Positions 9,471 to 64,000 of a stretch of 64,000 bases of DNA are shown here, in pieces. The stretch's first letter is position 1. Each line of letters begins with the position of its first letter. The position numbers and the translations under genes were made by a program. The notes below the pieces were generated by a model. It saw nothing but the letters and a program-made list of their open reading frames with translations, had not been told where the DNA came from and searched no databases. The stretch lies in sequence record NC_019410.1; one strand, written 5' to 3'.

Positions 9471-9471
9471 C

Positions 9472-12280: not shown

Positions 12281-12281
12281 C

Positions 12282-12776: not shown

Positions 12777-12784
12777 GTCTTTCC

Positions 12785-12850
12785 TGGCGCGAAAGTGTTG
12801 ACAGCCTGAAGGGACTCCTCTACACCCACGCTCGACGACAACGAGAGGAG
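12785..12850 (+). promoter_or_regulatory. phage promoter cassette
   Basis: TGGC-N9-TTGACA(12798)-N17-TACACC-N6-CGACGACAAC-GAGAGGAG. Confidence 0.8.
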
Positions 12851-12855
12851 TTCCC

Positions 12856-15134: not shown

Positions 15135-15644
15135 ATGGCCGACTTCAGCCGCGCCCGCCGGTCCATGGAGACCGCCGACCTGATCGAACGCCTCAAGGCT
15201 CTCTACGATCTGGAGGACGCCCGCGATATCCCAGACGAGGAGACCAAGGCCACCTTGAAGGAGGCGGTGGTCCATCTTGGGAGCCTGCATGCGCAGGTCG
15301 AGGCCGAGCGCGCCATGGTCAAGACGGTGATGGACCAGTCCCAGGGCTACAAGACCCTGCTCCTGACGGCGTCTGAGGACCCGGACTTCAAGCGGGCGGC
15401 CTCGCAAATTCGCCTGATGGATACCTATCCCCCGCGTCTGCGGGTGGCTGTCAACGCCTTCCAGCGGGCGATGGACGAGGCCGGACATCTCTCGGGGCCG
15501 GAGGGCCGCAAGATCAACGACCTGATCCAGGGCCATCTCCAACATGACCTCGCCGGCGTCATGGGGATGTCGATGAGCTACAATATCCGCGCCGCCGTCG
15601 CCGCGCTTCACGGCCTTCCGACCCCGGAGTCCAAGACCGAATGA
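15135..15644 (+). CDS. hypothetical protein (169 aa)
   Basis: GAGGAGG RBS. Confidence 0.7.
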   Translation: MADFSRARRSMETADLIERLKALYDLEDARDIPDEETKATLKEAVVHLGSLHAQVEAERAMVKTVMDQSQGYKTLLLTASEDPDFKRAASQIRLMDTYPPRLRVAVNAFQRAMDEAGHLSGPEGRKINDLIQGHLQHDLAGVMGMSMSYNIRAAVAALHGLPTPESKTE

Positions 15645-15853
15645 GCCGTCGCTACACCGGCCCGCGCTTCTGGATCGAGGAGGACGGACGCGTCCACAAA
15701 ATCCTCGACGGGGTCTCCGAGGTCGTCACCACCCTGACCGGGGACGAATTGAAGCTCCTGCGGGCCTGTGGCTGGCGGATAGGCTCGTCCACCCGTCGCT
15801 ACGCCTACAACCCCGCCCACCTTCTCCGCAACGCCCTGGGAGCCGCCAAATGA
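15641..15853 (+). CDS. hypothetical protein (70 aa)
   Basis: ATGA coupling. Confidence 0.65.
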   Translation: MSRRYTGPRFWIEEDGRVHKILDGVSEVVTTLTGDELKLLRACGWRIGSSTRRYAYNPAHLLRNALGAAK

Positions 15854-16422
15854 TCGACCCGAAAGCCAAACTCGCTGACCAAGTCGCCGGCCTCGGCCGT
15901 GACGGCGCCCGGCTCTGCGCCGAGGTGCAGGAACGCTGCGCCAGCAACATCGCCGACTCCGTGCTGGAATTCGTCGCCGACGCCGAGACGATCATCGAGC
16001 GCCAGCAAAAACGCGTCGATGAACTCCAGGTCTCGACGGCGCGTCGGATGCACGTCGAGCGGGCCTATCTGCGGGTGATCCAGGAGTTCATCGCCGCCAA
16101 GCGCCTGCCGAGCCTGACGGCGTTCCATGACGCGGTCGGCATGCTCCAGGCCCAGACCGAGCAGATGAACGGCGACATCGAGCGGCTCGCGACCTATCTG
16201 CGCGGACTGGACCGGCGCGCCATGGACCCTAAGCTGAAGGACCTCGTGGAGCACCTGGACTTCTACATCTTCCACGAGTTGATGCGGAAGATTCACTACA
16301 TCGAGCATTTCGTCCTGCGGGACGCCCGCCTCGCCCTGGTCAGCCTGACCGAGGCCGACTTCGGGCGGATGGGGCTGGGCGAGCGGCCCGAGCCCCCGGT
16401 CAGCCAGGACATGCCGTCGTGA
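15850..16422 (+). CDS. hypothetical coiled-coil protein (190 aa)
   Basis: ATGA coupling. Confidence 0.7.
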   Translation: MIDPKAKLADQVAGLGRDGARLCAEVQERCASNIADSVLEFVADAETIIERQQKRVDELQVSTARRMHVERAYLRVIQEFIAAKRLPSLTAFHDAVGMLQAQTEQMNGDIERLATYLRGLDRRAMDPKLKDLVEHLDFYIFHELMRKIHYIEHFVLRDARLALVSLTEADFGRMGLGERPEPPVSQDMPS

Positions 16423-16652
16423 TCGAGCACGTCTATCGTCGCGATCCGCGCGGGCGCGATTACGGGCTTCAATGCCTGGACCTCGACGAGGCGCTGAAGA
16501 TCGTCGCGGCCGAGAAGCAGGACTTCCTTCTGCGCTTGGTCGCGGTCCTGCACGAGAACAACCTTCTGCGCGACGCCGACGTCATGGAACTGCTCGGCAG
16601 GGGCTGGGCGCTCGAACCCTATGATCTCCACTACAGCGACGACGACGATTAG
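16419..16652 (+). CDS. hypothetical protein (77 aa)
   Basis: GTGA coupling. Confidence 0.65.
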   Translation: MIEHVYRRDPRGRDYGLQCLDLDEALKIVAAEKQDFLLRLVAVLHENNLLRDADVMELLGRGWALEPYDLHYSDDDD

Positions 16653-16655
16653 GCG

Positions 16656-16707
16656 TTGACAACACTCTCGCGCCAACATAGAACCACCCTCGACGACAAC
16701 GAGGAGG
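16656..16707 (+). promoter_or_regulatory. phage promoter cassette (28-bp identical core, copy 1)
   Basis: TTGACAACACTCTCGCGCCAACATAGAA then N6-CGACGACAAC-GAGGAGG. Confidence 0.85.
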
Positions 16708-16712
16708 CTTCG

Positions 16713-17096
16713 ATGAAGCTCGCGACCCAAGACCGCACCGACCCGCGCCTGAACGCGCGCTATCGCCTCGCCAAGGCGGTGTTCTACTATGGCGGCCCGC
16801 ACGAGTACCCGATCCACCTGAACGACTGGTGGAACGAGGTGACGCCGGCCGACGTCGAGGACCGCATCTCCGAACTCTGCCGCGAACTCTCCAAGCTGTC
16901 GGGTCAGACCCTGGCGCCGGCGACCTTCTACGAGCGGATGAAGCTGGGCTTCGTCGACCTCCCGGAAGTGAAGGACGAGGACTTCGCCACCCTGTCGGAG
17001 ACGACCCGCAACAACCTGCTCGCCATGCAGGACCGCTTCTCGGTCCACGGGAGCGGCTTCATGCTCTACTGGAACATCGTCAAAGAGGAGGCCTGA
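16713..17096 (+). CDS. hypothetical protein (127 aa)
   Basis: ATG 16713 after GAGGAGG. Confidence 0.75.
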   Translation: MKLATQDRTDPRLNARYRLAKAVFYYGGPHEYPIHLNDWWNEVTPADVEDRISELCRELSKLSGQTLAPATFYERMKLGFVDLPEVKDEDFATLSETTRNNLLAMQDRFSVHGSGFMLYWNIVKEEA

Positions 17097-17099
17097 GCC

Positions 17100-17459
17100 T
17101 TGGATCGCAACGACCCCGCCCAGCCCATGTGCAAGATCGCCGTCCTGGCCGGCCCCCTGTGGGAGGTCGATACCGACAACTGCGAGACCCTGCTGGTCCC
17201 GATCAAGGACGTCCCGCACCCCTGCGCCGAGAACTTCCAGGACGAGATCGACATGGCCCTCAACATGAGCGGCGAGGCCATGGACTGGCGCCGCGTCGAG
17301 GGCTACGCCGCCGTCCTGCGCGATCCGCGCGGCGCGGACATGTCGCCCGTCGAGGGGCCGTTCGCGACCGCCGAGGAGGCTTTCGCCTACGTCAAGGACC
17401 AGTGGAGCGACCGCATCCCCGGCTCGATGGGGCTGGCGCCCTACGAGGCCCCGCAATGA
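17100..17459 (+). CDS. hypothetical protein (119 aa)
   Basis: TTG start after GAGGAGG. Confidence 0.65.
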   Translation: MDRNDPAQPMCKIAVLAGPLWEVDTDNCETLLVPIKDVPHPCAENFQDEIDMALNMSGEAMDWRRVEGYAAVLRDPRGADMSPVEGPFATAEEAFAYVKDQWSDRIPGSMGLAPYEAPQ

Positions 17460-17725
17460 TCAAGGTGACGCGCCGCATGACCTGGGCTGACGCCGGCCGC
17501 TGCTCCAAGACCGACTGGACCGCGTGGCTCATCCCCGCCGGCCCGCTGATCGCGGCGCTGCCGTTCGCCGCCCTGACCGGCGCGTGCCTGTCGATCAAGG
17601 ACCCGACCCACACCAATCTGGCCATCGCCTTGCTGCCCGGCGCGGCGATGCTCTTCAACGGCTGGATGGCGACGTTCGCCTTCGACCAGTTCCTGCGCGG
17701 GCGGGCCGGCGAGGAGGTCCGCTGA
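17456..17725 (+). CDS. small membrane protein (89 aa, ~2 TM)
   Basis: ATGA coupling; two hydrophobic segments. Confidence 0.65.
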   Translation: MIKVTRRMTWADAGRCSKTDWTAWLIPAGPLIAALPFAALTGACLSIKDPTHTNLAIALLPGAAMLFNGWMATFAFDQFLRGRAGEEVR

Positions 17726-51792: not shown

Positions 51793-54525
51793 GTGAGCTA
51801 CTATCCGATCGAGGACCGCGCCAAGGCCCGGTCCGTCGTCAAGAACCTGCTGGACCTTCAGCGCGAGGCGGTCAAGGCCTCTCGCGGCGGCCTGATCCTG
51901 CCGCCCGACCAGAAGGCGATCATCACCCAGGTCACCGAGACCGAGGACCCGGCCCGCTGGGTCGACCTCCTGGGTCAGTTCGCCGATCGCGTCCAGACCG
52001 ATCACCTCGCCCGGCTCAAGCCCCTGGCCAAGCACGACTTCAACGCCTTCTGCGAATACGTCAACCCCGAGGAGGCCCCGGCCTCCAAGTGGCACGTCTA
52101 CCTGACCTCGCTCCTCCAGGAGATCGAGAACAACCACGAGCTTGAGCGCTTCGTGCTCAACTGCCCGCCCGGTCACGCCAAGCCGCTCGACGTCGACACC
52201 GAGGTCCTGATGGCCGACGGGTCCTGGAAGCGCCTGGGCGACATCACCGTGGGCGAGTACGTGGTCGGCGAGAGCGGCGCGCGCTGCAAGGTCACCGCCG
52301 TCCACGAGCAGGGCGAGCTTGCCACCCTGAAGATCACCACCGCCCACGGCCGCCAGATCATCGCCGCCCCCGATCACGCCTTCCGGGTCGGAAACACCTG
52401 GAAGGAGGCGGGCAAGCTGCGGCCGGGCGACGCTCTGTCCGTGGTCGGCGCCGCCAACCTCAACTACGACGCCAGCGGCAAGACCATCGACCACTTCGAG
52501 CTTGCCGCCTACCTCCAGGCCAAGGGCGGACGCTCCTACTTCCACCGCGTCCACAAGAGCGGGCCGAAGACCTACCGCAACGTCTTCCTGTGGACTTCCG
52601 ACCACCGCGAGGCCAGCAAGATCAGCGCCTGCCTCAAGCGCCTGGGGATCGCCTTCAAGGGGCGTCTGGCCAAGCACGAGCAGGTCTGGAAGATGCGTCT
52701 GGCCACCGAATGGGGCGACGCCCTGGCCGAGGAGTATGGCCTGGACGCGCGGATCGACGCGCGGCGGGTTCCGGCCTTTGTCACGAAAGGCGACGAGGAG
52801 CAGATCGCCCGCTACCTGTCGACCTACGCCTCCCTGGCCGGCGAGGCGCCCGACCGCTACACCATCCCGCGCATCATCCTCTACTTCAAGAACCCGGCCT
52901 TCGCCCGCGACATCCAGCGGCTGTTCGCCGTGGTCGGCGTCAACGCCCGCATCGAGGGGCGCAAGACCGGCCGCACCCGGCTGATCCTGTCGGGGCCGGA
53001 CCTGGAGGCCTACTTCGCCGCCGGCCTGACCTACACCGGCCCCAACGCCGACAAGCTCGACGACAAGCGCGTGGCCTTCCCGACCTCGCCCTCGCTGCTG
53101 GCCGACACCGTCACCTGGATCGAGCCGCACGGCGTGCGCCCCTGCCGCTGCCTGACCGTCGAGGACGAGCACACCTTCATCGCCGAAGGCGTGGTGGTCC
53201 ACAACTCGACCTACGCCTCGCGCCTGTTCGTGGCGTGGCGCCTGGGGCGCGATCCGCGCCAGAAGATCATCGGCGGCGGTCACTCCCAGCGCTTCGTCGA
53301 GAACGAGTTCTCCGGCAAGATTCGCAACCTCGTGCGCACCCCGCAATATCGCGACGTGTTCCCCGACGTGGTCATCGACCACGCCACCTCGGCCAAGGAC
53401 ATGTGGGCGATCGCCGGGCACGGCGGGCAGTACGCCGCCAAGGGCGCGGGGCAGGCCATCCACGGTCTGCGCGCCCACTTCGTCTGCGTCGACGACCCCT
53501 ACCGGTCGATCGAAGTGGCCGAGTCCGCGATCGAGCGCGAGAAGATCAAGACGTGGTTCTTCGGCGACGTTGGCTCGCGTCTGTTGCCGCTCGCCAAAGT
53601 ATTCCTCATCATGACGCGCTTCCATGAGGAAGATTTGACCGGGGAGATCATCAAACTCAACCAAGAAGTTCTCACCGGCGCCGACCGTTATCACATCGTT
53701 GAAGCGCCCGCCCTGTGCTACGACCCCGAGAACGACGTCCTGGGCCGGGCTCTGGGCGAAGTTTTGTGGGACTACTATGACTTGCATTATTTCAAGCGCA
53801 AGCGGTCCGAGTGGAAGTACCAAAGATTTGCTTTGGTTTATCAACAACTTGCCGACGCGGCCTCGGACACCTCCATCGCGTCCAAGTTTCAGACCTACGA
53901 TCACCTGCCCCACCTGGAGCCGAAGGTGCTCAAGGCCCGGCTTGACGCGGGTCACGCCGACGAGCGCGGGCGGCCGATTCCGGACCGCAAGGAGCACTTC
54001 CGGCGGGTGGTGGTCAGCGTCGACTCGGCCAACAAGCCCGGCGCCCGCAACGACTACAGCGTCGCCCAGGTCTGGGGGGAGACCCACGCCCGCAAGCACT
54101 ACCTGATCTACCAGGAGCGCAAGAAGGTCGACATCACCGGCCTGACCGAGATGATCGAGCGGGTGGCCAAGCGCTACGAGGTCGACGCCATCCTGGTCGA
54201 AGACAAGGGCAACGGCACCGCCTACATCCAGGCGCGGGGCCAGACCGACAGCCAGCGGCGGCTCGCCCCGGCCCCGATCGAGGCGATCCAGGTCCCGAGC
54301 ACCTATTCCAAGGAGTTCCGCTTCAACGAGATCGTCCCGATGATCGAGGCCGGCGAGGTCTTCCTGCCGGGCAAGGCCCCGTGGCTCGACCTGCTGATCC
54401 GCGAAATCGGTCAGTTCCCCGAAGGCGCCCATGACGACCAAGTCGACGCCATGACGCAGTACCTCCGCTGGGCCAAGTCCAAGCGCACGCGGTTCGGCGC
54501 GCGCAAGGTCGGCTCGATGGGCTGA
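51793..54525 (+). CDS. terL: terminase large subunit with intein (910 aa precursor, ~569 aa spliced)
   Basis: Walker A PPGHAK/S split by intein; Walker B FVCVDDP; coupling motif MTRFH; nuclease VVSVDSA...NDYS...HDDQVDAMTQ. Confidence 0.95.
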   Translation: MSYYPIEDRAKARSVVKNLLDLQREAVKASRGGLILPPDQKAIITQVTETEDPARWVDLLGQFADRVQTDHLARLKPLAKHDFNAFCEYVNPEEAPASKWHVYLTSLLQEIENNHELERFVLNCPPGHAKPLDVDTEVLMADGSWKRLGDITVGEYVVGESGARCKVTAVHEQGELATLKITTAHGRQIIAAPDHAFRVGNTWKEAGKLRPGDALSVVGAANLNYDASGKTIDHFELAAYLQAKGGRSYFHRVHKSGPKTYRNVFLWTSDHREASKISACLKRLGIAFKGRLAKHEQVWKMRLATEWGDALAEEYGLDARIDARRVPAFVTKGDEEQIARYLSTYASLAGEAPDRYTIPRIILYFKNPAFARDIQRLFAVVGVNARIEGRKTGRTRLILSGPDLEAYFAAGLTYTGPNADKLDDKRVAFPTSPSLLADTVTWIEPHGVRPCRCLTVEDEHTFIAEGVVVHNSTYASRLFVAWRLGRDPRQKIIGGGHSQRFVENEFSGKIRNLVRTPQYRDVFPDVVIDHATSAKDMWAIAGHGGQYAAKGAGQAIHGLRAHFVCVDDPYRSIEVAESAIEREKIKTWFFGDVGSRLLPLAKVFLIMTRFHEEDLTGEIIKLNQEVLTGADRYHIVEAPALCYDPENDVLGRALGEVLWDYYDLHYFKRKRSEWKYQRFALVYQQLADAASDTSIASKFQTYDHLPHLEPKVLKARLDAGHADERGRPIPDRKEHFRRVVVSVDSANKPGARNDYSVAQVWGETHARKHYLIYQERKKVDITGLTEMIERVAKRYEVDAILVEDKGNGTAYIQARGQTDSQRRLAPAPIEAIQVPSTYSKEFRFNEIVPMIEAGEVFLPGKAPWLDLLIREIGQFPEGAHDDQVDAMTQYLRWAKSKRTRFGARKVGSMG
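52183..53205 (+). mobile_element. intein (341 aa), Pro1 / Cys-F4, degenerate LAGLIDADG domain
   Basis: Starts PLDVDTEVLMADGSWK; block B AAPDHAF; block F CRCLTVEDEHTF; ends GVVVHN with Ser+1. Confidence 0.92.
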
Positions 54526-54598
54526 CGAGGCCCGTTAACCACGTTTGTTAACCTCCGCCGGGGCCTTAACCCTAACACGGCGAGGGTTAACAGGTCCA

Positions 54599-54736
54599 GG
54601 GACCCTTCGAAATTAACCTTTCGGGGACCCTGGGAAATCGTAAGGCAGGGACCCTGGCCATTTTCCGGCTGGGGACCCTGGCAAATTCACCGCCGGGGAC
54701 CCTCCGAAATTCATCCTCGGGGACCCTGGCAAATCA
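54599..54736 (+). repeat. six ~24-bp tandem repeats, core GGGACCCT(GGC/CCG)AAATT
   Basis: GGGACCC at 54599, 54624, 54648, 54672, 54696, 54720. Confidence 0.9.
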
Positions 54737-54747
54737 AGGAGCCGGCG

Positions 54748-54939
54748 ATGGCCGAATTTCTCGCCCTGATCCCCAACCTCGCGCCGTTCCTGGTCTGGGG
54801 AATCCTCCTCTGGATCGCCGCCGAGGTGGTCTGGAGCGTCTGCCTCTGGGTCTATGGCCTGCGGACCCTGTTCAAGTTGCACCGCGATGATCTGGCCGAG
54901 GCGATCAGCTTCGAGCGGGCCTTGAGCCCCTTCGACTAG
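54748..54939 (+). CDS. small membrane protein (63 aa)
   Basis: AAGGAG RBS; hydrophobic LAPFLVWGILLWIAAEVVWSVCLWV. Confidence 0.7.
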   Translation: MAEFLALIPNLAPFLVWGILLWIAAEVVWSVCLWVYGLRTLFKLHRDDLAEAISFERALSPFD

Positions 54940-55022
54940 GCGCGGCCTGCCGACCTAAGTCACGGACTGTAGGTTTCGTGACAAGGTGAGATATTCCACA
55001 ACGATTTCAAAGGCTTACTGCG

Positions 55023-55271
55023 ATGTCGATCCGCACGTTCTTCCACGATCTGGCCGTCCGTTTCGTCGTTTTGGGGTGGATTTTTGCCCGAAAACCGCTG
55101 AAATGGGCTCCAAAAGGGCATAATTTTCAGCCTAAACCGCCGGTCCAGGTCGGCGCCCTGGCGGCCGGCTCGCTCCTCGCCCTCAGTCTGGCGCTCGGCG
55201 GGCTCTGGTTCCGCTTCACGTTTCCGGACAAAAGTCAAGTGGTCTCGCGCCGGCCGCAGGCTATGTCATAG
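55023..55271 (+). CDS. small membrane protein (82 aa)
   Basis: Two hydrophobic segments; lower GC; weak RBS. Confidence 0.5.
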   Translation: MSIRTFFHDLAVRFVVLGWIFARKPLKWAPKGHNFQPKPPVQVGALAAGSLLALSLALGGLWFRFTFPDKSQVVSRRPQAMS

Positions 55272-55332
55272 ACCGTGGGCTTCGTGACCAGATCACGCTT
55301 CCGTTACCGCTCCAGCCCTTGTGAGGCCTCGG

Positions 55333-55437
55333 ATGTTCGCCTTTCTCCGCCGGCTCAGCCTCGCCGCCGTCCATGGCGTGCTCTGGGCGATCCTCCTGGC
55401 GATGCTCGCCCTGGGCGGGCCGCGCCGCCCGCTCTAA
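55333..55437 (+). CDS. 34-aa hydrophobic peptide
   Basis: Manual translation MFAFLRRLSLAAVHGVLWAILLAMLALGGPRRPL; GAGG RBS. Confidence 0.55.
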   Translation: MFAFLRRLSLAAVHGVLWAILLAMLALGGPRRPL

Positions 55438-55489
55438 AGCGTCATATCTGACGCCTAAGGCCCCCTAAGGCCTCATCTGTGAGACATTC

Positions 55490-55525
55490 AACGCCCTCGT
55501 GTTCCTCTGAACGCGGGGGCGTTTT
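55490..55525 (+). terminator. Rho-independent terminator
   Basis: AACGCCCTCGTGTTC-CTCT-GAACGCGGGGGCGTT (G-U pairs) then T-run. Confidence 0.7.
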
Positions 55526-55630
55526 GACGTCGGCGCATTTTTGACTTGACGCGCGAGCGTTTTGACGCGGGCGCATTTTTGATTCGACGGGCGAGCGTTT
55601 TGACGTCCGAGCATTTTTCAACTTGACGTC
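55519..55630 (+). repeat. three 38-bp tandem repeats
   Basis: GCGTTTTGACGnnnGnGCATTTTTnAnTnGACG units at 55519, 55557, 55595. Confidence 0.9.
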
Positions 55631-55657
55631 GTTCCATTTACCGGGAGCGCCTTAGGG

Positions 55658-55824
55658 TTAACGCCGGCCGCCGAGCCCTGGGGCGATTTACCACCGCCAC
55701 GTTAACCTAACGCCTGTTAACCTATCGGTTGTTAAGGTTAACGCCCCGTTAGGGTTAACGCCCCTTAACCCTGCCCGCGTTAAGGTTAACGCGCCCCGGC
55801 CCAGGCCCTACCCGTTAACCTTAA
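55658..55824. promoter_or_regulatory. dense cluster of 11 TTAA (CtrA half-site-like) motifs
   Basis: TTAA at 55658, 55702, 55717, 55732, 55738, 55755, 55765, 55780, 55786, 55815, 55821. Confidence 0.7.
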
Positions 55825-55848
55825 CCGCCCGACCCCCGCGCCCAGGCC

Positions 55849-55882
55849 ATACCCGGTAGGGCCTGACGGCCCTACCGGGTAT
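55849..55882. repeat. perfect 15-bp inverted repeat with 4-nt loop
   Basis: ATACCCGGTAGGGCC-TGAC-GGCCCTACCGGGTAT. Confidence 0.9.
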
Positions 55883-55936
55883 GACCCCGCGCCCCGGCGG
55901 AGGCCAGGGACCGCCCCGGCGCTTTTTCGCGCCCCG

Positions 55937-55968
55937 TTTACCTTTTGTTAACGTCTGGCCTCTAGGGT
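55937..55968 (+). promoter_or_regulatory. CtrA-box promoter 1
   Basis: TTTA-CCTTTTG-TTAAC-N10-TAGGGT. Confidence 0.8.
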
Positions 55969-56016
55969 CGCCCTTGTCCCCGCCGCACTCCCGCGCCGGG
56001 CAAGGAGCTTCCCGCC

Positions 56017-56202
56017 ATGGTCCCCGACTCGATCATGAACCCCCGCGACCACTTCCACCGCCTGCGCGAGGAAACCGCCCGCGCTCTGGTCGAGGCCTTC
56101 GCCGAATCCGACCCCGGCGAGGATTACCGCGCCGAGGAAAAGGCCGGCGCGTGGGTTGTCGCCTATTACGACGCGGCGGGCGAATTCGTCGCCTATCTCT
56201 AG
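56017..56202 (+). CDS. hypothetical protein (61 aa)
   Basis: AAGGAG RBS. Confidence 0.7.
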   Translation: MVPDSIMNPRDHFHRLREETARALVEAFAESDPGEDYRAEEKAGAWVVAYYDAAGEFVAYL

Positions 56203-56226
56203 CCGCCTTCGCCCCCTGGCGCCGCG

Positions 56227-56258
56227 TTAACGGTTTGTTAACATGTCGGCGCCAGGGT
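56227..56258 (+). promoter_or_regulatory. CtrA-box promoter 2
   Basis: Perfect TTAA-CGGTTTG-TTAAC-N10-CAGGGT. Confidence 0.8.
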
Positions 56259-56301
56259 CGCCCTAGCCCGGCGCGTCGCCGCGCCTTCGGAGAAAACCGC
56301 C

Positions 56302-57105
56302 ATGCTCTACACCCCCGCCGCCCGCCGCCTTCGCGGCTATCGCGAAACCGCCGCGAAGAACGCCGAAATTCACGCCCGCCCGCACATGGCCGGCAACGTC
56401 GCCGGCTACAACGAGTCGGTGTGGCCGACGACGGCGCTAGGCGTCGCCGCCAAGGCCGGCGCCTTCAAGCGCCCCGAAACCGCCGGCAACTGGTCGGAGG
56501 ATCGCAAAGCCTATTACGCCCCCGCGTGGCCGGCCGGCTGGCGCGTGCTGGGCACGGCCGAAGAGGTCTGCCGCAAGGAAGGCTCGCGCCGGGTGGAACA
56601 TTCCGGATGGTACACGACGCCCGACGACTACAGCGCCACGCTTTCGGGCTATGTGCTGCAAATCCCCGCCCGCGACGGCCGCCCGCAATACGTCGCCGGG
56701 ACCGCCCATAGTGAATGGGACGGGGTGACCCTCTACCCCGCCGACCGCTACGACAACCCGCTTGACGCGGCGAGCGCCGCCGACCGTCACGCCGAACGCG
56801 ACGCCGAAGAGGAACGCGAATATCAAACCGCGTGGCAAGCGGGCCAGCGCTACGCCGAACTCGGCGCCGAAGCCAAGGAGGCCCGCAAGGAAGCGCTGGC
56901 GATCCTCGCCGAACGCCGCAAGGTCAAGGGGCTGGAAACCCCCGCCTTGTGCGGCGCGATCCGGGCGCAAGTCGCGGCCCTGCTAGGCCGGATCGAAGAG
57001 GCGCGCGCCTCGCGCGCCAAGCTCAAGGAAGGCGAGGACTCGCGCCTCATGTTCTACCCCTCCGCCGCCATGGTCGCGGCCTTCAATGACGGCGCGGCGT
57101 CGTGA
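56302..57105 (+). CDS. hypothetical protein (267 aa)
   Basis: GGAG RBS. Confidence 0.75.
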   Translation: MLYTPAARRLRGYRETAAKNAEIHARPHMAGNVAGYNESVWPTTALGVAAKAGAFKRPETAGNWSEDRKAYYAPAWPAGWRVLGTAEEVCRKEGSRRVEHSGWYTTPDDYSATLSGYVLQIPARDGRPQYVAGTAHSEWDGVTLYPADRYDNPLDAASAADRHAERDAEEEREYQTAWQAGQRYAELGAEAKEARKEALAILAERRKVKGLETPALCGAIRAQVAALLGRIEEARASRAKLKEGEDSRLMFYPSAAMVAAFNDGAAS

Positions 57106-57311
57106 AGGTCGCCCGCGATAGCTTCGCCGTGTTCTGGACCCTCCCGCAAGGCGGGGTCCAATTTCACGCCGACATAAAACGGGCGCTCTATCCGACCGCC
57201 CGCGACGCCGCCCGCGCTTTTAGCGCCATGTTCCCCCGTGACCGGGTCCGGAGCGTCCGCGACGCCTCCGGCCGCTTCCTGGCCTTCAAGGAGTCCGCCC
57301 CGTGCGCCTGA
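57102..57311 (+). CDS. hypothetical protein (69 aa)
   Basis: GTGA coupling. Confidence 0.6.
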   Translation: MKVARDSFAVFWTLPQGGVQFHADIKRALYPTARDAARAFSAMFPRDRVRSVRDASGRFLAFKESAPCA

Positions 57312-57583
57312 CAAGCTACAACGTCAACGGAACCGGCTTTAAGGGCGGCTCCGCCCCGCCCGTCCCCGCCCAAGGCCTGACCGGTCACGCCGACGGCTTG
57401 AACCTTTGGGTTCCCTCGCGCGAGCATATCGCCGCCATGCTCCCGCAACGCTGGCGCCACGCCTTCGCCCGCGCGTCGTTTTGGTATGACGCGCACGACA
57501 ATAAAAAGCCGTGTCGCGCCGACCTCTACGACTCGCGCGGCCGGTACCTGACTCAGGTCTGGGCGCACCCGGTTTTCAGCTAG
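57302..57583 (+). CDS. hypothetical protein (93 aa)
   Basis: AAGGAG RBS, GTG start. Confidence 0.65.
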   Translation: MRLTSYNVNGTGFKGGSAPPVPAQGLTGHADGLNLWVPSREHIAAMLPQRWRHAFARASFWYDAHDNKKPCRADLYDSRGRYLTQVWAHPVFS

Positions 57584-57589
57584 GCCAGG

Positions 57590-57625
57590 ACGCCCCGGAA
57601 AATCTTCCGGGGCGTTTACCTTTTG
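57590..57625 (+). terminator. terminator overlapping CtrA box
   Basis: ACGCCCCGGAA-AATC-TTCCGGGGCGT then TTACCTTTT. Confidence 0.75.
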
Positions 57626-57678
57626 TTAACCTCTGGCCTCTAGGGTGACTTTCGCCGCCGGGCAATCCCGCCCGCCGG
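57615..57678 (+). promoter_or_regulatory. CtrA-box promoter 3 plus AATCCC-loop hairpin
   Basis: TTTA-CCTTTTG-TTAAC-N10-TAGGGT; GGGC-AATCCC-GCCC at 57660-57673. Confidence 0.8.
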
Positions 57679-57704
57679 ACCCTCTTTCAAGGATTGCTCC
57701 CGTC

Positions 57705-58754
57705 ATGACCTCTCATTCCATGGTCGCGCACCGTTGGGCGCAGGACGACGAGAACGGCCGCACCGCGCGCGGCTTCAACATGTATTTCGAGCGCTACGGG
57801 CGCGGCGCCGACCGCGTCAACGTGATTTTTTCCTACGGGACTCACTTCCCGGCCGCCGCCTTCGTGACCGACGCGCACGGCCGCCGCGTGGTTCTGGTGA
57901 CGACTCGCGGCTACAGCGTTTCGACCGCGAAACACCTTTCCCACATCCGCCGCGCCATCCCGTCCGGGACCCCCTGCTTTTCCGTGCCGCACGTGTCGCG
58001 GATGCACAAGCCGGGCGGGTCGGGCGACTTCCACGGGGACAACCTGCGCGCCTATGTCGAGAGCGCCGCCGGCCTCGCCGAAAAGGCCAAGCGCGCCCGC
58101 GTCAACGGCCCTTGGCTGCTTAGCCAAGCCCGCGAAACCCTCGCCGAAGCGCAACGCTACGCCGACGCCTTCAAGCTGAAAACCAAGGTTCCGGCCTTGG
58201 AAGACGTCGCCGGCCAATGGGCGAAGATGACGGCCGCCAAGGCGCGGGCCGAAGCCAAGGCCAAGCGTGACGCCGAAAAGGCCGCCAAGGCGCGCCGCGA
58301 AGCCGAACGGCTCGCCGACGCCGAAGCCTTCGCCGCTTGGATGCGCGGCGAGCGCCAGAGCGCCCCGTTTAGCTACCGGGTGCGCGATGACGGGACCGTC
58401 TATCTTCGCCGCTTCCGGGGCGTGGTCCGCGACCTGCGCAGCCAAGAGCGCGACGGCTCGCGCGTCGATGAACTGCAAACCTCGCAAGGCGCGGCCGTGC
58501 CGTGGGAACACGCGGTCAAGGCCTTCCGGTTCATCAAGCTTTGCCGCGAACGCGGCGAGAGCTTCCACCGCAACGGCCGGGTGATTCGCGTCGGACACTT
58601 CCAAGTTGACGCGATCAGCCCGAACGGGGACATGACGGCCGGTTGTCACCGGTTCGCGTGGGATGAAATCGAACGCCTCGCCAGGGCCGAAGGGGTTTTC
58701 GACCTCCCCGCCGACGCTGGCGCCGTCGAAACCCGGCAAGCCGAACCGGCCTAA
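57705..58754 (+). CDS. hypothetical phage protein (349 aa)
   Basis: AAGGATTGC leader; FSYGTHF...GYSVSTAKH and TSQGA...VGHF...GCH motifs. Confidence 0.75.
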   Translation: MTSHSMVAHRWAQDDENGRTARGFNMYFERYGRGADRVNVIFSYGTHFPAAAFVTDAHGRRVVLVTTRGYSVSTAKHLSHIRRAIPSGTPCFSVPHVSRMHKPGGSGDFHGDNLRAYVESAAGLAEKAKRARVNGPWLLSQARETLAEAQRYADAFKLKTKVPALEDVAGQWAKMTAAKARAEAKAKRDAEKAAKARREAERLADAEAFAAWMRGERQSAPFSYRVRDDGTVYLRRFRGVVRDLRSQERDGSRVDELQTSQGAAVPWEHAVKAFRFIKLCRERGESFHRNGRVIRVGHFQVDAISPNGDMTAGCHRFAWDEIERLARAEGVFDLPADAGAVETRQAEPA

Positions 58755-58772
58755 GCCTCCCCGCCCCTCTCG

Positions 58773-58799
58773 CGCCCCGGCTCCCCGCCGGGGCGTTTT
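58773..58799 (+). terminator. Rho-independent terminator
   Basis: CGCCCCGG-N7-CCGGGGCG-TTTT. Confidence 0.75.
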
Positions 58800-58809
58800 C
58801 GTGTACGCG

Positions 58810-58873
58810 GTAACCTTTTGTTAACTTCTGGCCTCTAGGGTGACTTTCGCCGCCGGGCAATCCCGCCCGCCGG
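58810..58873 (+). promoter_or_regulatory. CtrA-box promoter 4 plus AATCCC-loop hairpin
   Basis: GTAA-CCTTTTG-TTAAC-N10-TAGGGT; AATCCC at 58859. Confidence 0.8.
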
Positions 58874-58889
58874 CCAAGGATCGCAGACT

Positions 58890-59189
58890 ATGAATCTTTT
58901 CGTTGTCGCCATTGACCCCGCCCTCATCCCTTCGGCCGCCGGCTTCGTGGTCGCCTCCCCCTACGGGTGCGGCAAGTGGCGCGCGTGCGTCGGGAGCGAG
59001 GCGGACATGATCGCGCTTCGCGACAAGATGCGCCGCGCGCACCCGGCCCCGGAAGGCTACAGCGTCCAGCCCCTGGCGTCGTTCCTGGCCTATCTGGAGA
59101 CGGTCGGGGATAGCCCTTATGACCGGTTCCGCGCCCATGACGCCGCCGCCCGCATCCTTGACACCCTGACGACGCATCTCGCCGCCTAG
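58890..59189 (+). CDS. hypothetical protein (99 aa)
   Basis: AAGGATCGC leader. Confidence 0.7.
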   Translation: MNLFVVAIDPALIPSAAGFVVASPYGCGKWRACVGSEADMIALRDKMRRAHPAPEGYSVQPLASFLAYLETVGDSPYDRFRAHDAAARILDTLTTHLAA

Positions 59190-59247
59190 CCCCGCCAAGC
59201 CCCCGGCCGCGCGCCGGGGGCGCTTTCCCTCGAAAGGATCGCCGACC

Positions 59248-59559
59248 ATGACAACCCGTCTTATCGCCGTTCGCGGCCCGACCGCCGCCGAACTCGCCGA
59301 CCCGTCCAGCCGCGCGGGCGGCGCCGAAGTCGTTTTCGAGCGCCGCGACCGCGAAGGCCGCACGCGCCTTGTGTTCGCCTCGACCTGCTACGGCTCATAT
59401 CAGCAATGGGGCGAAACCCGCGACGTGCTCGCCGACAACGTCGAGGCGGTCACGCTCTGGGCCGAAGGCATGGCGGCCGTTGCCGCCCTCATCGACGAGA
59501 GCGACGACGACGACGAGAGCGACGACGCCCCGGCCGAAGATGACGACGGGGAGGCGTGA
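59248..59559 (+). CDS. hypothetical protein with acidic tail (103 aa)
   Basis: AAGGATCGC leader. Confidence 0.7.
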   Translation: MTTRLIAVRGPTAAELADPSSRAGGAEVVFERRDREGRTRLVFASTCYGSYQQWGETRDVLADNVEAVTLWAEGMAAVAALIDESDDDDESDDAPAEDDDGEA

Positions 59560-59562
59560 GCC

Positions 59563-59982
59563 ATGCGCACAACCAAGGCTCAACGCTTCGCCGCCATCGC
59601 CTTTGACGCCCTGGCCAAGGCCCTAAGCGAGCCGCGCCAAGCCGTCGCCCGCGTGACCAAATGGGAGGGCGCGGGCCATAGCTTCGCCAACCTGCAACGC
59701 GATTATGAGCGGTACGGCCCCGGCGCCCGCTCATGGTTCGGCCGGGCTGAAATGCGCTTCTTTGGGACGCGCCTAGAGGCCGCGCCGCTGGATTTCCCGG
59801 CGCTGGGCTGCACCCTCTTTCTGACCTCCGAAACCCCGCCCGGCGCCGGCCGGGTCTGGACCCTTCGCGCCTATGTCTGGGCTTCGGCCGATATCACCAC
59901 GCTAACCCATGGCGACGAAACCGACGCGGCGACCGCGCAAGCGGCCTTTGACCTGCTTTGGCGGGTCCTTTCCGGACAGTAA
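59563..59982 (+). CDS. hypothetical protein (139 aa)
   Basis: GGAGG RBS; WFGRAEMRFFGTRL motif. Confidence 0.7.
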   Translation: MRTTKAQRFAAIAFDALAKALSEPRQAVARVTKWEGAGHSFANLQRDYERYGPGARSWFGRAEMRFFGTRLEAAPLDFPALGCTLFLTSETPPGAGRVWTLRAYVWASADITTLTHGDETDAATAQAAFDLLWRVLSGQ

Positions 59983-60042
59983 CCTTTTGTTAACTTCTGC
60001 CCGCTAGGGTCTTCTTGCGGCCGGGCAATCCCGCCCGGCCGC
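59979..60042 (+). promoter_or_regulatory. CtrA-box promoter 5 plus AATCCC-loop hairpin
   Basis: GTAA-CCTTTTG-TTAAC-N10-TAGGGT; perfect stem GCGGCCGGGC-AATCCC-GCCCGGCCGC 60017-60042. Confidence 0.8.
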
Positions 60043-60060
60043 ATCTTGGAGACAGCGCCC

Positions 60061-60333
60061 ATGACCCGCGCTCAAGCCCTCGCCGACATGAACGCCCTTC
60101 CCGGTATCATCGCCTCCTTTGAGCGCGAGACGGGCGAATATCGCGTGACCCTGCGCTTTGGCCCGCTCCCCATGGGGCGCGGCGCCCAAGAGTGGATGCG
60201 CGCGCGCCGCGAAGCCGTCGCCAGCTACAGCGACGACAAGGCCGACGCCCTGGCCACCGCCCGCGACATGTCCGCCCGCTGGGAGGCGATGAGCGCCGAA
60301 GAGCGTTCGCGCCTCTATCACAACCCCGCCTAA
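60061..60333 (+). CDS. hypothetical protein (90 aa)
   Basis: GGAG RBS before ATG 60061. Confidence 0.7.
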   Translation: MTRAQALADMNALPGIIASFERETGEYRVTLRFGPLPMGRGAQEWMRARREAVASYSDDKADALATARDMSARWEAMSAEERSRLYHNPA

Positions 60334-60399
60334 GACCCCGCGCGCCGCCCTGGCCTTCGCCGGGGCGGCTCCCTCAACCCCTCGCAAGGATCGCACCCC

Positions 60400-60684
60400 A
60401 TGACCGCCCGTAAGCCCCTGACCAAGGAACAAAAGGCCCGCCGCCGCGCGACCCGCCGCGCCGCCCGCCTCAACTGGTCGGATGAGCGCCGCGCTCGCGA
60501 ATTCGAGCGTCAAGCCCGCTTCTTCCTGATGATCGCCACCCGCGCCCAAGGCGCCGGCCAAGGCCAGGAAGCCGCCCGCCTCGCCACGGTCGCACAACGC
60601 AAGGTGACTAACTGGCGCATGGCGCAGGCCTGCGCCCGGATTAACGCCCTGGCCGCGCATCCGTTCGCGGCCGTGGTCGCCTAA
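60400..60684 (+). CDS. hypothetical basic protein (94 aa)
   Basis: AAGGATCGC leader. Confidence 0.7.
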   Translation: MTARKPLTKEQKARRRATRRAARLNWSDERRAREFERQARFFLMIATRAQGAGQGQEAARLATVAQRKVTNWRMAQACARINALAAHPFAAVVA

Positions 60685-60697
60685 GGAGGCCCGCCCG

Positions 60698-60880
60698 ATG
60701 ACGCACCCTCACGCCCTGGCGCTGATCGCCCTCGCCGAAAAGGTGTTACCGCTTACCCGGCTGCACCCGCTCGACCAACGCGCCGCCGCCGTCGATCTAA
60801 TCGGCGACCTCTACCGCCTCGCCGACGATATCGACGCGACCCCGCAAGCCCCCGCCCTGACGCAACCGAAGGCCGCCTAA
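60698..60880 (+). CDS. hypothetical protein (60 aa)
   Basis: AAGGAGG RBS. Confidence 0.7.
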   Translation: MTHPHALALIALAEKVLPLTRLHPLDQRAAAVDLIGDLYRLADDIDATPQAPALTQPKAA

Positions 60881-60883
60881 GCC

Positions 60884-61474
60884 ATGAACCCGAACCGCTA
60901 CCGCCTCGCGCCCCGCGACCGCTTCAGCCGTGAGCTTGCCGAAACGCTCTATCAGGCGGCCGAAGCCGTCGCCCGCGTGATTCCGCTCATGCCGGAGTCC
61001 GCCCCCGATGAGCGCCGCGCGCTGGGCAAGGTCCGCGCCGACCTTCTAACCCATAGCGCCGGCGCCCTTGTTCCCAAGCCGCCGGCCGCCGTGCTCGAAA
61101 CCCTCGTTTGGGTTGTCGAGATGGCGCAAGATCGCGCGACTAACGCCGATTTCAACACCGCCCAAGAAGGACTCGACGAGCACGAGTCCCTAGCCTTTGT
61201 CGCCGACTGGCTGGAAGCCGAAGGCCAGGACGTGACGCCGATTCGCAACGCGCAACCGTCCGCCGACGCCCTGGCCGAACTCGCCGCCCGCCGCGACGCC
61301 GAACAAGCGGCGCTAGACGCCTTGGAGGCCGAAGCCCTGGCCGAAGCGCCGGGCGACGTGATCACCGACGCCTTGCGCCCCTATCTGGGCGCCGCCCTGG
61401 CCGAAAACCACGCCGACGACGTGCTAGACGCCCTCACGCGCGCCGGCTTCCAAATCACCCGCAAGGAGGCCTAA
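60884..61474 (+). CDS. hypothetical protein (196 aa)
   Basis: Operon packing. Confidence 0.7.
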   Translation: MNPNRYRLAPRDRFSRELAETLYQAAEAVARVIPLMPESAPDERRALGKVRADLLTHSAGALVPKPPAAVLETLVWVVEMAQDRATNADFNTAQEGLDEHESLAFVADWLEAEGQDVTPIRNAQPSADALAELAARRDAEQAALDALEAEALAEAPGDVITDALRPYLGAALAENHADDVLDALTRAGFQITRKEA

Positions 61475-61479
61475 AGCCC

Positions 61480-62058
61480 ATGACCGACTCCGCCAAGATC
61501 ACCGGCGCGCTCGCGCTACTCGCCATCGCGGCCGATAATCTCCGCCAAGGCCCGGCCATGTCCAAGGCCGCCGACAACGTCACCAACGTCTGTAACTACG
61601 CCCTGACGCGCGCGACCATGCTCAAGGCCGCCGACCAAATCGGCGAGGCGCTGGAGGCGCTGGGCGCCCTGCAAGCGGGCGGCTATGTGATCGCCCGCCG
61701 CCGCGACGTTTTCACCGATGCGGGCGAGAAGCTGGGCGACCTGTTGGCGGCGCTTTATGACGCCGTCCCGAACTACGCCGTAAGATCGCAGCGCCTCGCC
61801 GACGCCCTGAGTCCCGCGCGAAATTACGTCTATCAGCCCCGGTTCCGGGTCAAGCTGGACGCCGCGCCCGGCGCGCTTTTGACCGACTGCGACACGGGCG
61901 CAACGGTCTATTTCCAGCCGGGCGACGACGCCGACGCCTTCCGGGCCGAATTCGCCCCGTGGGTTCACGCCGCCAACGTGACGGCCGAAGGCGCGGCCCT
62001 GGCCTCGATGATGAACCCGACCGCCGAAGAGTATTTCAGCCCCGCCACGGGGGTCTAA
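61480..62058 (+). CDS. hypothetical protein (192 aa)
   Basis: AAGGAGG RBS. Confidence 0.7.
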   Translation: MTDSAKITGALALLAIAADNLRQGPAMSKAADNVTNVCNYALTRATMLKAADQIGEALEALGALQAGGYVIARRRDVFTDAGEKLGDLLAALYDAVPNYAVRSQRLADALSPARNYVYQPRFRVKLDAAPGALLTDCDTGATVYFQPGDDADAFRAEFAPWVHAANVTAEGAALASMMNPTAEEYFSPATGV

Positions 62059-62063
62059 CGCCC

Positions 62064-62366
62064 GTGGCCCTGACCTTCGCCCCGCAATCGACGCGCTACG
62101 CCGTGGAAGTCCCCGAACGCGACTTTCTGGCCCTGACCCGCGCCGAGGAAATTCTAGCCCCTGGCCCCTATCTGGAGCCGTCGCTTAGCGAGCGTTTGGA
62201 GGCGCAAGCCGGCGTTTGGGATGTCGAGTATAACGGCCATTTCGGCGCGGCCGTTTACTTGACGCTCGACGTTGACGCCGACTCCCCGGCCGCCCGCGAC
62301 GCCCTGGCCTCGATCATCGCCGACCAACTGGCCAAGGCCAAGGCGTGGAAGCGCCAGCCCGCCTAA
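62064..62366 (+). CDS. hypothetical protein (100 aa)
   Basis: GTG 62064 within ORF 61959..62366; WDVEYNGHFG motif. Confidence 0.65.
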   Translation: MALTFAPQSTRYAVEVPERDFLALTRAEEILAPGPYLEPSLSERLEAQAGVWDVEYNGHFGAAVYLTLDVDADSPAARDALASIIADQLAKAKAWKRQPA

Positions 62367-62547
62367 GTCATCATTCCTATCGTCTATGACTTGTCACCGG
62401 CCGAACTCTTGCCCGGTGACAGTCTGGGCAAGTAAAGCTCACTCTGGATTTTATGACTTAGCGCAAAGGATTGAAATTGCTCGAAAAATTCCTCGAAGCT
62501 CACAAAGTTGTTTTCTGGCTGCTTTTGCTGGCCTGTTTGTGGCGCTT

Positions 62548-62613
62548 TTAACGGTTTGTTAACCCCTGGCCCTCTAGGGTCGAATTCCCGGCGCGGCAAT
62601 CCCGCCGCCCGGC
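62548..62613 (+). promoter_or_regulatory. CtrA-box promoter 6 plus AATCCC-loop hairpin
   Basis: Perfect TTAA-CGGTTTG-TTAAC-N11-TAGGGT; GCGGC-AATCCC-GCCGC. Confidence 0.8.
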
Positions 62614-62634
62614 CTTCCTTCGGAGCTTCTGATC

Positions 62635-63081
62635 ATGTTCGCTTCCGTGACCCTTCCCGCCCATGACGCCCAAGGCCTGAGCCTCGAAACCGTCCACATG
62701 GTTTTCGCCCGCGAACTGGCGCAACATTTCGACCACGTGATTTCCGCCCCCGTGGTCGAAAGCTGGCGCGACGAGGACACCGGCGCCGACCACGCGCAAG
62801 CCGCCGTTTGCTTCACCGTCTCGGCGACCCCCGCCGCGTGGGAAGCCAAGGGCGGGCGCCTCGCGCGCCGGCTGGAAAACCTCGCCGCGCGCTATGCCGC
62901 CGACTGCGACGCCCCGGCCCTGACTGTCACCCACTGCGACGGCCAAACGGTCTATGTCGGCGCTCTGGAAGCCCTGGCGCGCCCCGCCCCGGTGCAAGGC
63001 CCGACCCGTGAGGCGGACCCGGCTTTCCTCCCCCGCCAGCGTGAGGACAAGGCCGCCCGCTTCGATCGCCTGACCGCCTAG
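62635..63081 (+). CDS. hypothetical protein (148 aa)
   Basis: GGAG RBS. Confidence 0.7.
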   Translation: MFASVTLPAHDAQGLSLETVHMVFARELAQHFDHVISAPVVESWRDEDTGADHAQAAVCFTVSATPAAWEAKGGRLARRLENLAARYAADCDAPALTVTHCDGQTVYVGALEALARPAPVQGPTREADPAFLPRQREDKAARFDRLTA

Positions 63082-63097
63082 CCCCTGGCCTCCCCCT

Positions 63098-63130
63098 AGC
63101 GCACCGCCCCTAGAAAGGCGGTGCGCTTTT
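63098..63130 (+). terminator. Rho-independent terminator
   Basis: AGCGCACCGCC-N8-GGCGGTGCGCT-TTT. Confidence 0.8.
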
Positions 63131-63139
63131 CTGTGTCTG

Positions 63140-63172
63140 TTTACTTGTTGTTAAGGAATAGCCTGCTAGTGT
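63140..63172 (+). promoter_or_regulatory. CtrA-box promoter 7
   Basis: TTTA-CTTGTTG-TTAA-N12-TAGTGT. Confidence 0.7.
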
Positions 63173-63223
63173 CCCCTTGTTGGCGGACGCATCCCGCGCC
63201 CGCCCCTTTCTGGATCGCTCCCC

Positions 63224-63616
63224 ATGGCTCGCCCCTCTGACCTGCTCAACGTCAACGCCGCCCGCGTCCTGGCTTGCCTTGAGCCTATCGCCGCCGCCGC
63301 TAAGACCGCCCCGGCCGCCGACCGCGCCGCCCTTTCCTACCTGCTCGACGCTGGCGAGTATGTCGCCGCGTGGCGCCGCAACCTCACGGAAACCGACCGC
63401 CGCAAGGCCTATGGCGCGGCCTGCGCCGCCGAAGCCCTGGCGCTCGCTAACGCCTATCAGCCCGCCACCCTGCAAGGCGGCGCCGTCCGCCGCGCTCTGG
63501 GCGCCTATGCCGCCGCCCTAAAGGTCCTGCTAGACGGGGAGCCGGTCAAGGCGGTGCGCGCCGCCGAAGGCGCGGCGCTTTCGGTCCGCGCTCGCTACGC
63601 CAACACCCGCCTTTAA
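63224..63616 (+). CDS. hypothetical Ala-rich protein (130 aa)
   Basis: GGATCGC leader. Confidence 0.7.
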   Translation: MARPSDLLNVNAARVLACLEPIAAAAKTAPAADRAALSYLLDAGEYVAAWRRNLTETDRRKAYGAACAAEALALANAYQPATLQGGAVRRALGAYAAALKVLLDGEPVKAVRAAEGAALSVRARYANTRL

Positions 63617-63644
63617 CCTCTTGTTAACACCTCCCGGCTATGGT
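63613..63644 (+). promoter_or_regulatory. CtrA-box promoter 8
   Basis: Perfect TTAA-CCTCTTG-TTAAC-N10-TATGGT; first TAA is the upstream stop codon. Confidence 0.8.
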
Positions 63645-63670
63645 CGGGAGGTCGCAAGGAGACACCCGAC

Positions 63671-63865
63671 ATGACCCGCCCCGGCCCCGCCTCGCTCCTG
63701 ACCCCGCAAGCCCGCTTCTCGTCGCCGCGCGTCCTGATCCTTCCGGGCGCGGCTCCCATGCCGATTCGCCAGCCGCGCGGCCTTTGCGCCGTCGAGTGCG
63801 TCGCCCTTGGCGTGACGCTGGGCGCGGCGCTCTACCTCGCCGCCCGCGTGTTCGGTCTGGTCTGA
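63671..63865 (+). CDS. small protein with C-terminal TM helix (64 aa)
   Basis: AAGGAG RBS; VALGVTLGAALYLAARVFGLV. Confidence 0.6.
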   Translation: MTRPGPASLLTPQARFSSPRVLILPGAAPMPIRQPRGLCAVECVALGVTLGAALYLAARVFGLV

Positions 63866-63899
63866 CCAGACCCCCGCCCCGCCCCCGGTCGGACCGGTC

Positions 63900-63928
63900 G
63901 GGGGTGTGTCCCATAATGACACACCCCC
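63900..63928. repeat. perfect 11-bp inverted repeat
   Basis: GGGGGTGTGTC-CCATAAT-GACACACCCCC. Confidence 0.8.
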
Positions 63929-64000
63929 GCCACCTAGTATCTTTTTTGATTCGGAGGGACCCAAAGGCCCCCTACGTTAACCATTTTTGGCGGCGCCCCC

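Follow-up and report, generated by a model that had tools for sequence, protein, structure and literature searches.

Probable CtrA-dependent promoter cassettes in the direct terminal repeat of the Caulobacter phage Karma

We analysed a 64,000-nucleotide (nt) stretch of sequence record NC_019410.1 (hereafter the window), which is identical in sequence to positions 157829-221828 of the genome of Caulobacter virus Karma (JX100811), a phiCbK-like giant siphophage, and spans the right end of that genome. Our subject is the right copy of the direct terminal repeat (DTR) and the boxes in it that resemble binding sites of the host cell-cycle regulator CtrA. In a script comparison the left and right DTR copies proved to be letter-for-letter the same, so what is described here holds for both genome ends. 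All 20 annotated genes of the repeat lie on the + strand and are of unknown function. Searches of their proteins against Pfam and PHROGs returned only families of unknown function and no named family; gp011, for example, carries DUF7447. Eight promoter cassettes, here called P1 to P8, split the repeat into eight transcription units that together hold 17 small genes (gp004-gp020; Table 1).

A previous reading of this DNA, made from its letters without database searches (the sequence-only reading), had proposed eight CtrA boxes, three of them perfect, each followed at 11-12 nt by a -10-like hexamer. A box is present at every proposed site, always on the + strand. The perfect TTAA-N7-TTAA boxes are those at 56227, 62548 and 63613, a number to be set against 0.01 expected in 64 kb. 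With the relaxed pattern KTWA-N7-TTAA the window yields 13 matches, compared with 0.19 expected. These are confined to 55754-63627, which bears out the claim that no full CtrA boxes occur at 7-46 kb. The remaining five cassette boxes have one mismatch each, invariably in the distal half-site, which varies among TTAA, TTTA and GTAA; the promoter-proximal half-site is a perfect TTAA in 8/8. Box and hexamer are separated by 11 nt in six of the cassettes and by 12 nt in the others, and the hexamers are TAGGGT (five times), CAGGGT, TAGTGT and TATGGT, again as first proposed.

The combination of box and -10 hexamer is restricted to the DTR and to the + (gene) strand within the 211.6-kb unit genome, and just two stray box matches fall outside both DTR copies in the whole 221.8-kb genome. 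The packing is dense, with three perfect and five near-perfect boxes in 10 kb, or about one cassette per 1.3 kb, compared with just 14 perfect boxes in the 4-Mb genome of Caulobacter henricii, a member of the host genus, where four of the 14 lie at the origin region. Those 14 perfect boxes share no common hexamer at the phage spacing, a result that neither supports nor contradicts TAGGGT as a -10 element. We also considered whether TTAA is avoided outside the repeat, as might be read from raw counts (7 in 53.7 kb vs 30 in 10.25 kb) and from base composition (80 observed vs 173 expected). This idea was dropped, as no depletion of TTAA is left in the genome body once a second-order Markov model is applied (observed/expected 2.5).

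Table 1. Predicted promoter cassettes and associated features of the right terminal repeat (positions in the window)
Feature	Coordinates	Strand	CtrA box	Spacer (nt)	-10-like hexamer	Predicted start	Genes or remarks
Right copy of the DTR	53747-64000	+					10,254 bp; identical to genome positions 1-10254
TTAA / GGTTAAC half-site array	55640-55830	+					12 TTAA in 300 bp; densest TTAA cluster in genome
P1	55937-55968	+	TTTACCTTTTGTTAA	11	TAGGGT	~55975	gp004 (56017-56202)
P2	56227-56258	+	TTAACGGTTTGTTAA (perfect)	11	CAGGGT	~56265	gp005-gp007 (56302-57583); orthologue of tested phiCbK gp005 promoter
Intrinsic terminator, end of P2 unit	57588-57617	+					-24.1 kcal/mol, z -5.6, U-tract; annotated in GenBank record; abuts P3 box
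P3	57615-57646	+	TTTACCTTTTGTTAA	11	TAGGGT	~57653	gp008 (57705-58754)
Leader hairpin of P3	57655-57678	+					Loop AATCCC; begins ~2 nt past predicted start
Intrinsic terminator, end of P3 unit	58772-58796	+					z -4.3, U-tract; 13 nt before P4 box
P4	58810-58841	+	GTAACCTTTTGTTAA	11	TAGGGT	~58848	gp009-gp011 (58890-59982)
Leader hairpin of P4	58849-58874						Equivalent to that of P3
P5	59979-60010	+	GTAACCTTTTGTTAA	11	TAGGGT	~60017	gp012-gp017 (60061-62366)
Leader hairpin of P5	60016-60043						Equivalent to that of P3
P6	62548-62580	+	TTAACGGTTTGTTAA (perfect)	12	TAGGGT	~62587	gp018 (62635-63081); orthologue of tested phiCbK gp018 promoter
Leader hairpin of P6	62588-62612						Equivalent to that of P3
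Intrinsic terminator, end of P6 unit	63098-63127	+					z -5.7, U-tract; annotated in GenBank record; 12 nt before P7 box
P7	63140-63172	+	TTTACTTGTTGTTAA	12	TAGTGT	~63179	gp019 (63224-63616)
Leader hairpin of P7	63182-63204						Equivalent to that of P3; loop CATCC
P8	63613-63644	+	TTAACCTCTTGTTAA (perfect)	11	TATGGT		gp020 (63671-63865)

The same cassettes recur among relatives. We scanned twelve phiCbK-like DTRs (Karma together with phiCbK, Magneto, Swift, Rogue, Ccr29, Ccr5, CcrBL10, RBC8, BL57, Colossus and CcrPW), and the DTR of each of the eleven relatives carries 8-22 cassette copies. Across the set, 141 boxes have a -10-like hexamer 10-13 nt downstream, at a distance of 11 nt (89 boxes), 12 nt (46) or 10 nt (6), and 131/141 pass a stricter -10 test. 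The promoter-proximal half-site was set by the search pattern, so its invariance across the twelve DTRs is by construction. Positions that the pattern left free are nevertheless conserved among the 86 unique cores: C5 in 79/86, T9 in 79/86, T10 in 78/86, G11 in 81/86 and T20 in 76/86. The true motif is therefore an extended palindrome, TTAAC-N5-GTTAA, plus TT, and the consensus of the cassette box is (T/G)T(A/T)AC-N5-GTTAA. In order, a cassette consists of the CtrA box, a TAnnnT -10 hexamer 11-12 nt further on, a hairpin near the predicted RNA 5' end (7/8 cassettes) and a ribosome-binding site. A consensus scan found no sigma-70-type promoter at any of the eight cassettes, and they lack a -35 hexamer.

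In its geometry the phage cassette corresponds to the CtrA-activated promoters of the host. The box begins 26-27 nt before the -10 hexamer, which, assuming a start about 7 nt after the hexamer, puts the predicted 5' nt of the box at -38 where the spacing is 11 nt and at -39 where it is 12 nt. In the global start-site map of C. crescentus, most CtrA promoters place the 5' nt of the motif between -38 and -40 (Zhou et al. 2015); this is the mode in the 'full motif' set as well as in the 'half motif activator' set, and the host ctrA P2 promoter is at -39. The predicted position of the phage box thus equals the mode of the mapped host CtrA promoters, and the match in geometry that the sequence-only reading had asserted is upheld. 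In common with host promoters such as ctrA P2, fliQ and sciP, the phage cassettes have a single box over the -35 position and no -35 hexamer. The proximal half-site is better conserved than the distal one in host fliQ (CTAA-N7-TTAA) and fliL (AAAA-N7-TTAA), just as it is in Karma. What sets the phage promoters apart from those of the host is that they are stereotyped copies of one another, equipped with a standard leader and with TAGGGT as a stronger -10.

Direct experimental evidence comes from published work on phiCbK. Mascolo et al. (2022, Front Microbiol, PMC9437464) found the predicted CtrA sites of phiCbK-like phages to be sharply clustered within the DTRs, and listed Karma as a clustered-site ('LPEG') phage with 19 predicted sites. 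The earlier remark that CtrA sites have been reported in such phages is therefore correct, Karma itself being in that dataset. In their assays phosphorylated CtrA (CtrA~P) shifted probes upstream of phiCbK gp005 and gp018, and mutation of the boxes abolished binding. In a temperature-sensitive (ts) ctrA strain at 30 °C, reporter activity fell, more than 29-fold for the gp005 promoter and 5-fold for the gp018 promoter. By gene order and size, these genes are gp005 and gp018 of Karma. The P2 region is identical to the phiCbK gp005 probe at 98/99 positions, with the same box, spacer length and hexamer, and the P6 region is ~97% identical to the gp018 probe, again with the same box, spacer length and -10.

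The proposal that these are CtrA-activated promoters is thus sustained both by the near identity of P2 and P6 to promoters shown to be bound by CtrA~P and to need CtrA, and by the agreement with host geometry. We consider it very probable that the boxes are activator sites of modular CtrA-dependent promoter cassettes that divide the Karma DTR into eight units. For P2 and P6, the CtrA mechanism is experimentally supported through the phiCbK orthologues. In the mechanism that we envisage, host CtrA~P would bind over the -35 position and recruit the host sigma-73 RNA polymerase, as at host CtrA promoters. No phage protein would be needed, and the genes would become readable upon entry of the DNA into a cell containing active CtrA.

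Several points weigh against this reading. CtrA dependence of the six cassettes other than P2 and P6 is suggested by their close similarity to those two, and in five of these the distal half-site is mismatched (TTTA or GTAA). P2 itself, orthologous to the strongest of the tested promoters, has CAGGGT instead of TAnnnT. All transcription starts are predicted ones, and that of P8 would lie at about 63651. The presence of phiCbK-type DTR sequence in four RNA-seq runs of one study speaks for the reading, but the assembled contigs show presence only; they give no levels, timing, strand or ends, and they break at a repeated 67-nt cassette, not at starts. Finally, P8 may be something other than a simple promoter and is the least certain of the eight, because its hexamer is enclosed in the loop of a 10-bp hairpin (63629-63652) that is conserved. 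The stem of this hairpin is kept by paired changes (Karma CCTCCCGG/…GGGAGG vs phiCbK CCCCCCGG/…GGGGGG). Hairpins around the -10 like that of P8 are also present in some cassettes of Swift, Rogue and RBC8.

That DTR promoters depend on CtrA was already known for phiCbK-like phages, Karma included. The published system (PMC9437464) concerns the same phage group, and its sites are DTR-concentrated, intergenic and promoter-proximal, as they are here. It scores sites by a motif model, without the fixed spacing from box to -10, the missing -35, the fusion of terminators with promoters or the leader hairpin. Here a virulent phage plainly ties a block of its genes to a regulator of the host cell cycle, a principle that is already in print. 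The present analysis adds the exact promoter anatomy, with predicted starts, and an argument that the published model of timing may be wrong. Phage phi29 is alike in that its promoters are tied to a developmental master regulator of the host (Spo0A), and differs in that Spo0A represses the early promoters of phi29, whereas CtrA activates here.

The sequence-only reading spoke of a probable first-injected region, a proposal that derives from the nature of the genome ends and from analogy with phage T5. Both physical ends of the genome are DTR copies, and whichever end leads would therefore bring a DTR copy, which would make a DTR copy the first DNA to enter. The pre-early region of coliphage T5, its left terminal repeat (first-step-transfer DNA), offers a parallel: it too is a direct terminal repeat of about 10 kb, with small co-oriented unknown genes read by the unmodified host polymerase. 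T5 is characterised by two-step transfer, an injection stop signal and pre-early timing, and the likeness of the phiCbK-like phages to it concerns repeat size and gene layout. The promoters of T5 need no host activator, unlike those of Karma. Gill et al. (2012) compared the repeat with that of T5 by size only and took the left boundary as the start of packaging. By their account phiCbK gp126, which is homologous to T5 A1, belongs to the replication module and not to the repeat. Takeover genes of the A1/A2 type were not found among the DTR proteins, as judged by the lack of a named-family match in Pfam or PHROGs.

The inference of the sequence-only reading that the earliest expression is hard-wired to the host G1 state is plausible but disputed, and whether the DTR promoters fire in the infected swarmer (G1) cell is, in our judgement, an evenly balanced question. 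A more specific version, which we hold slightly more tentatively, assigns them to the pilA/sciP-type G1 class. They would be switched on by the very CtrA state to which the cell owes its pilus receptor, and off when CtrA is degraded at the swarmer-to-stalked transition. The result would be a host-timed pre-early pulse, the opposite of 'lytic deferment'. Were G1 firing to hold, the 17 unknown genes would be a phage takeover set in a non-replicating swarmer cell and good candidates for factors acting on the host cell cycle.

Lytic deferment was put forward by the experimenters themselves (PMC9437464), who read the system as one of deferred, not immediate, expression. The same CtrA-activated promoters would be silent in the fresh swarmer and fire when CtrA returns in the predivisional cell. 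We think this somewhat unlikely, though it is the strongest of the alternatives that we weighed, and mixed or other timing behaviour takes the probability left over by G1 firing and deferment. In favour of deferment and against G1 firing, host starts with a full TTAA-N7-TTAA at -38 to -40 show almost no activity at 0-40 min and reach their maximum at 80-120 min. Most host promoters with a full box at -39 are predivisional.

The evidence on the other side comes from the behaviour of the ts allele. At 30 °C, ctrA401 cells show increased activity of late-S promoters (PfliQ, 241%), poor activity of the G1 promoters PpilA, PsciP and PhfsJ, and a loss of CtrA401 occupancy that is specific to the G1 class (Delaby et al. 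2019). The two tested phiCbK promoters do not rise at 30 °C, as late-S promoters do, but collapse; this is the G1 pattern, and G1 timing is therefore mildly favoured over deferment. Strain LS2195, used for the phage reporter assays, carries ctrA401. Both PMC9437464 and Delaby et al. (2019) trace their ts allele to Quon et al. (1996). A second line of evidence concerns SciP, which shuts off late-S promoters in G1 from sites at -60 to -90. A full SciP motif (GCGNC-N5-GNCGC) at -60 to -90 is absent from 8/8 cassettes, which speaks against deferment as weak evidence; half motifs in that interval number 2.1 vs a background of 1.6 per 40 nt, in G+C-rich DNA. In addition, phage RNA as a whole made up 14% of transcripts by 15 min in a published RNA-seq time course of phiCbK infection in an unsynchronised culture (McLaughlin et al. 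2023, GEO GSE241057). The text of that account says nothing on the repeat genes.

A different kind of alternative, which we regard as improbable, is that part of the TTAA signal, namely P8 and the half-site array at 55640-55830, has a role at the level of DNA, as CtrA has at the host origin. Candidate roles would be to hold CtrA on the entering DNA, to repress, or to control replication or packaging. The array, about 110 nt upstream of P1, includes 15- and 17-bp tandem units and one GTTAACGCCCCTTAA box. It probably also binds CtrA, and it has no -10 at the right distance despite its wealth of TTAA. The case for a DNA-level role is helped by the buried -10 of P8 and the compensatory changes that keep its hairpin in relatives, and by the extended CtrA half-site TTAACCAT (63977-63984), which lies ~20 nt from the physical right end and, in the left repeat, likewise inside the right boundary. 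Phage CcrSC has TTAA arrays upstream of full TTGACA promoters. They are clusters of the form TTAACC-TTAA-N7-TTAA-GGTTAA at 6008-17700, and they lie 40-60 nt upstream of the TTGACA promoters without replacing the -35. Against such a role, the box and hexamer of P8 have the same spacing in all close relatives, and the seven cassettes of standard geometry fall outside the scope of the putative DNA-level function.

Very improbable is the last alternative, in which CtrA is not the direct activator, the cassettes being housekeeping promoters with TTGTTA as a weak -35 or targets of a phage-encoded factor, and the CtrA dependence of the reporters being indirect: the TTG at box positions 9-11 is no less conserved than the half-sites and the ctrA(ts) strain is pleiotropic, but TTGTTA, the sole TTG-containing hexamer, stands only 12 nt from the -10, vs 17 nt in the TTGACA promoters of the phage, G11 mirrors C5 to give the extended palindrome, which is found in host sites too, the binding of purified CtrA~P is lost when the box is mutated, and the fusions are active in uninfected cells, hence no phage factor is required.

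The distal half-site of P3 (TTTA) overlaps the U-tract of the preceding terminator, the stop codon of gp011 (TAA) forms positions 2-4 of the P5 box, and the distal half-site of the P8 box contains the stop codon of gp019. The sequence-only reading had four boxes directly following a terminator hairpin. Three of these terminators are convincing, before P3, P4 and P7; upstream of 55937 the predicted folding is no more stable than that of shuffles (z 0.04), and that part of the claim falls. Strong G+C hairpins without a proper U-tract are also found at 59199-59222, after gp009, and at 60344-60369, after gp012, and the phiCbK counterpart of the former is annotated as a terminator in phiCbK. These two hairpins may partially insulate gp010-011 and gp013-017, genes without a promoter of their own.

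Downstream of the -10, the leader hairpin is G+C-rich and begins 5-12 nt after the hexamer, near the predicted RNA 5' end. Leaders fold with a mean energy of -15.2 kcal/mol, vs -10.4 in random DTR windows (p ~1e-14), and 61/93 unique leaders have an A(A)TCC-type loop. In leaders with this loop the first five stem positions pair in 82-97% of cases, compared with at most 60% in shifted registers except at one position, and the stems comprise at least three different sequences. Leaders could be told apart from random windows by folding energy and by loop-anchored pairing, but not by perfect-stem length. Our guess is that the hairpin serves as a 5' stabiliser of the mRNA. A shared AAGGATCGC leader, proposed earlier for several genes, did not survive as such. 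There are exactly three copies (58876, 59234 and 60386), and with one mismatch allowed the 22 matches are at chance level (22.3 expected). Each copy lies 5-6 nt before a start codon, and AAGGATCGC is therefore the ribosome-binding (Shine-Dalgarno) region of three genes.

A second promoter family occupies 7179-37571. It has the form (gtg)TTGACA, a spacer mostly of 17 nt (15-18) and TAnAnn, with no CtrA box needed; examples are at 7212, 9664, 12798, 16656, 25882, 36173 and 37566. Most copies have a conserved leader, CTCGACGACAACGAGGA, which is able to fold into a hairpin of 4 bp that ends in the ribosome-binding site. The earlier statement that no TTGACA cassettes occur in the region of P1 to P8 needs a qualification: one exact TTGACA is found at 59158, inside gp009, although it lacks the flanking sequence that accompanies TTGACA in the promoter cassettes of 7-46 kb.

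The DTR contains further repeats upstream of P1. Between gp003 and the TTAA array, a 38-bp unit, ACGCGCGAGCGTTTTGACGTCGGCGCATTTTTGACTTG, occurs three times in tandem at 55511-55628, and each copy has TTGAC motifs. Six spaced copies of a GGGGACCCTGG(C)AAAT-like motif are found at 54596-54735, ahead of gp001 and past the point where the terminase large-subunit fragment ends. Immediately upstream of these copies, at 54535-54616, are five TTAA, with GTTAACC twice at N9 spacing. Within the P3 unit, about 200 nt of gp008 (58467-58665) share 74-75% DNA identity with genes of Brevundimonas phages, among them vB_BsubS-Delta, the other CtrA-linked phage of PMC9437464.

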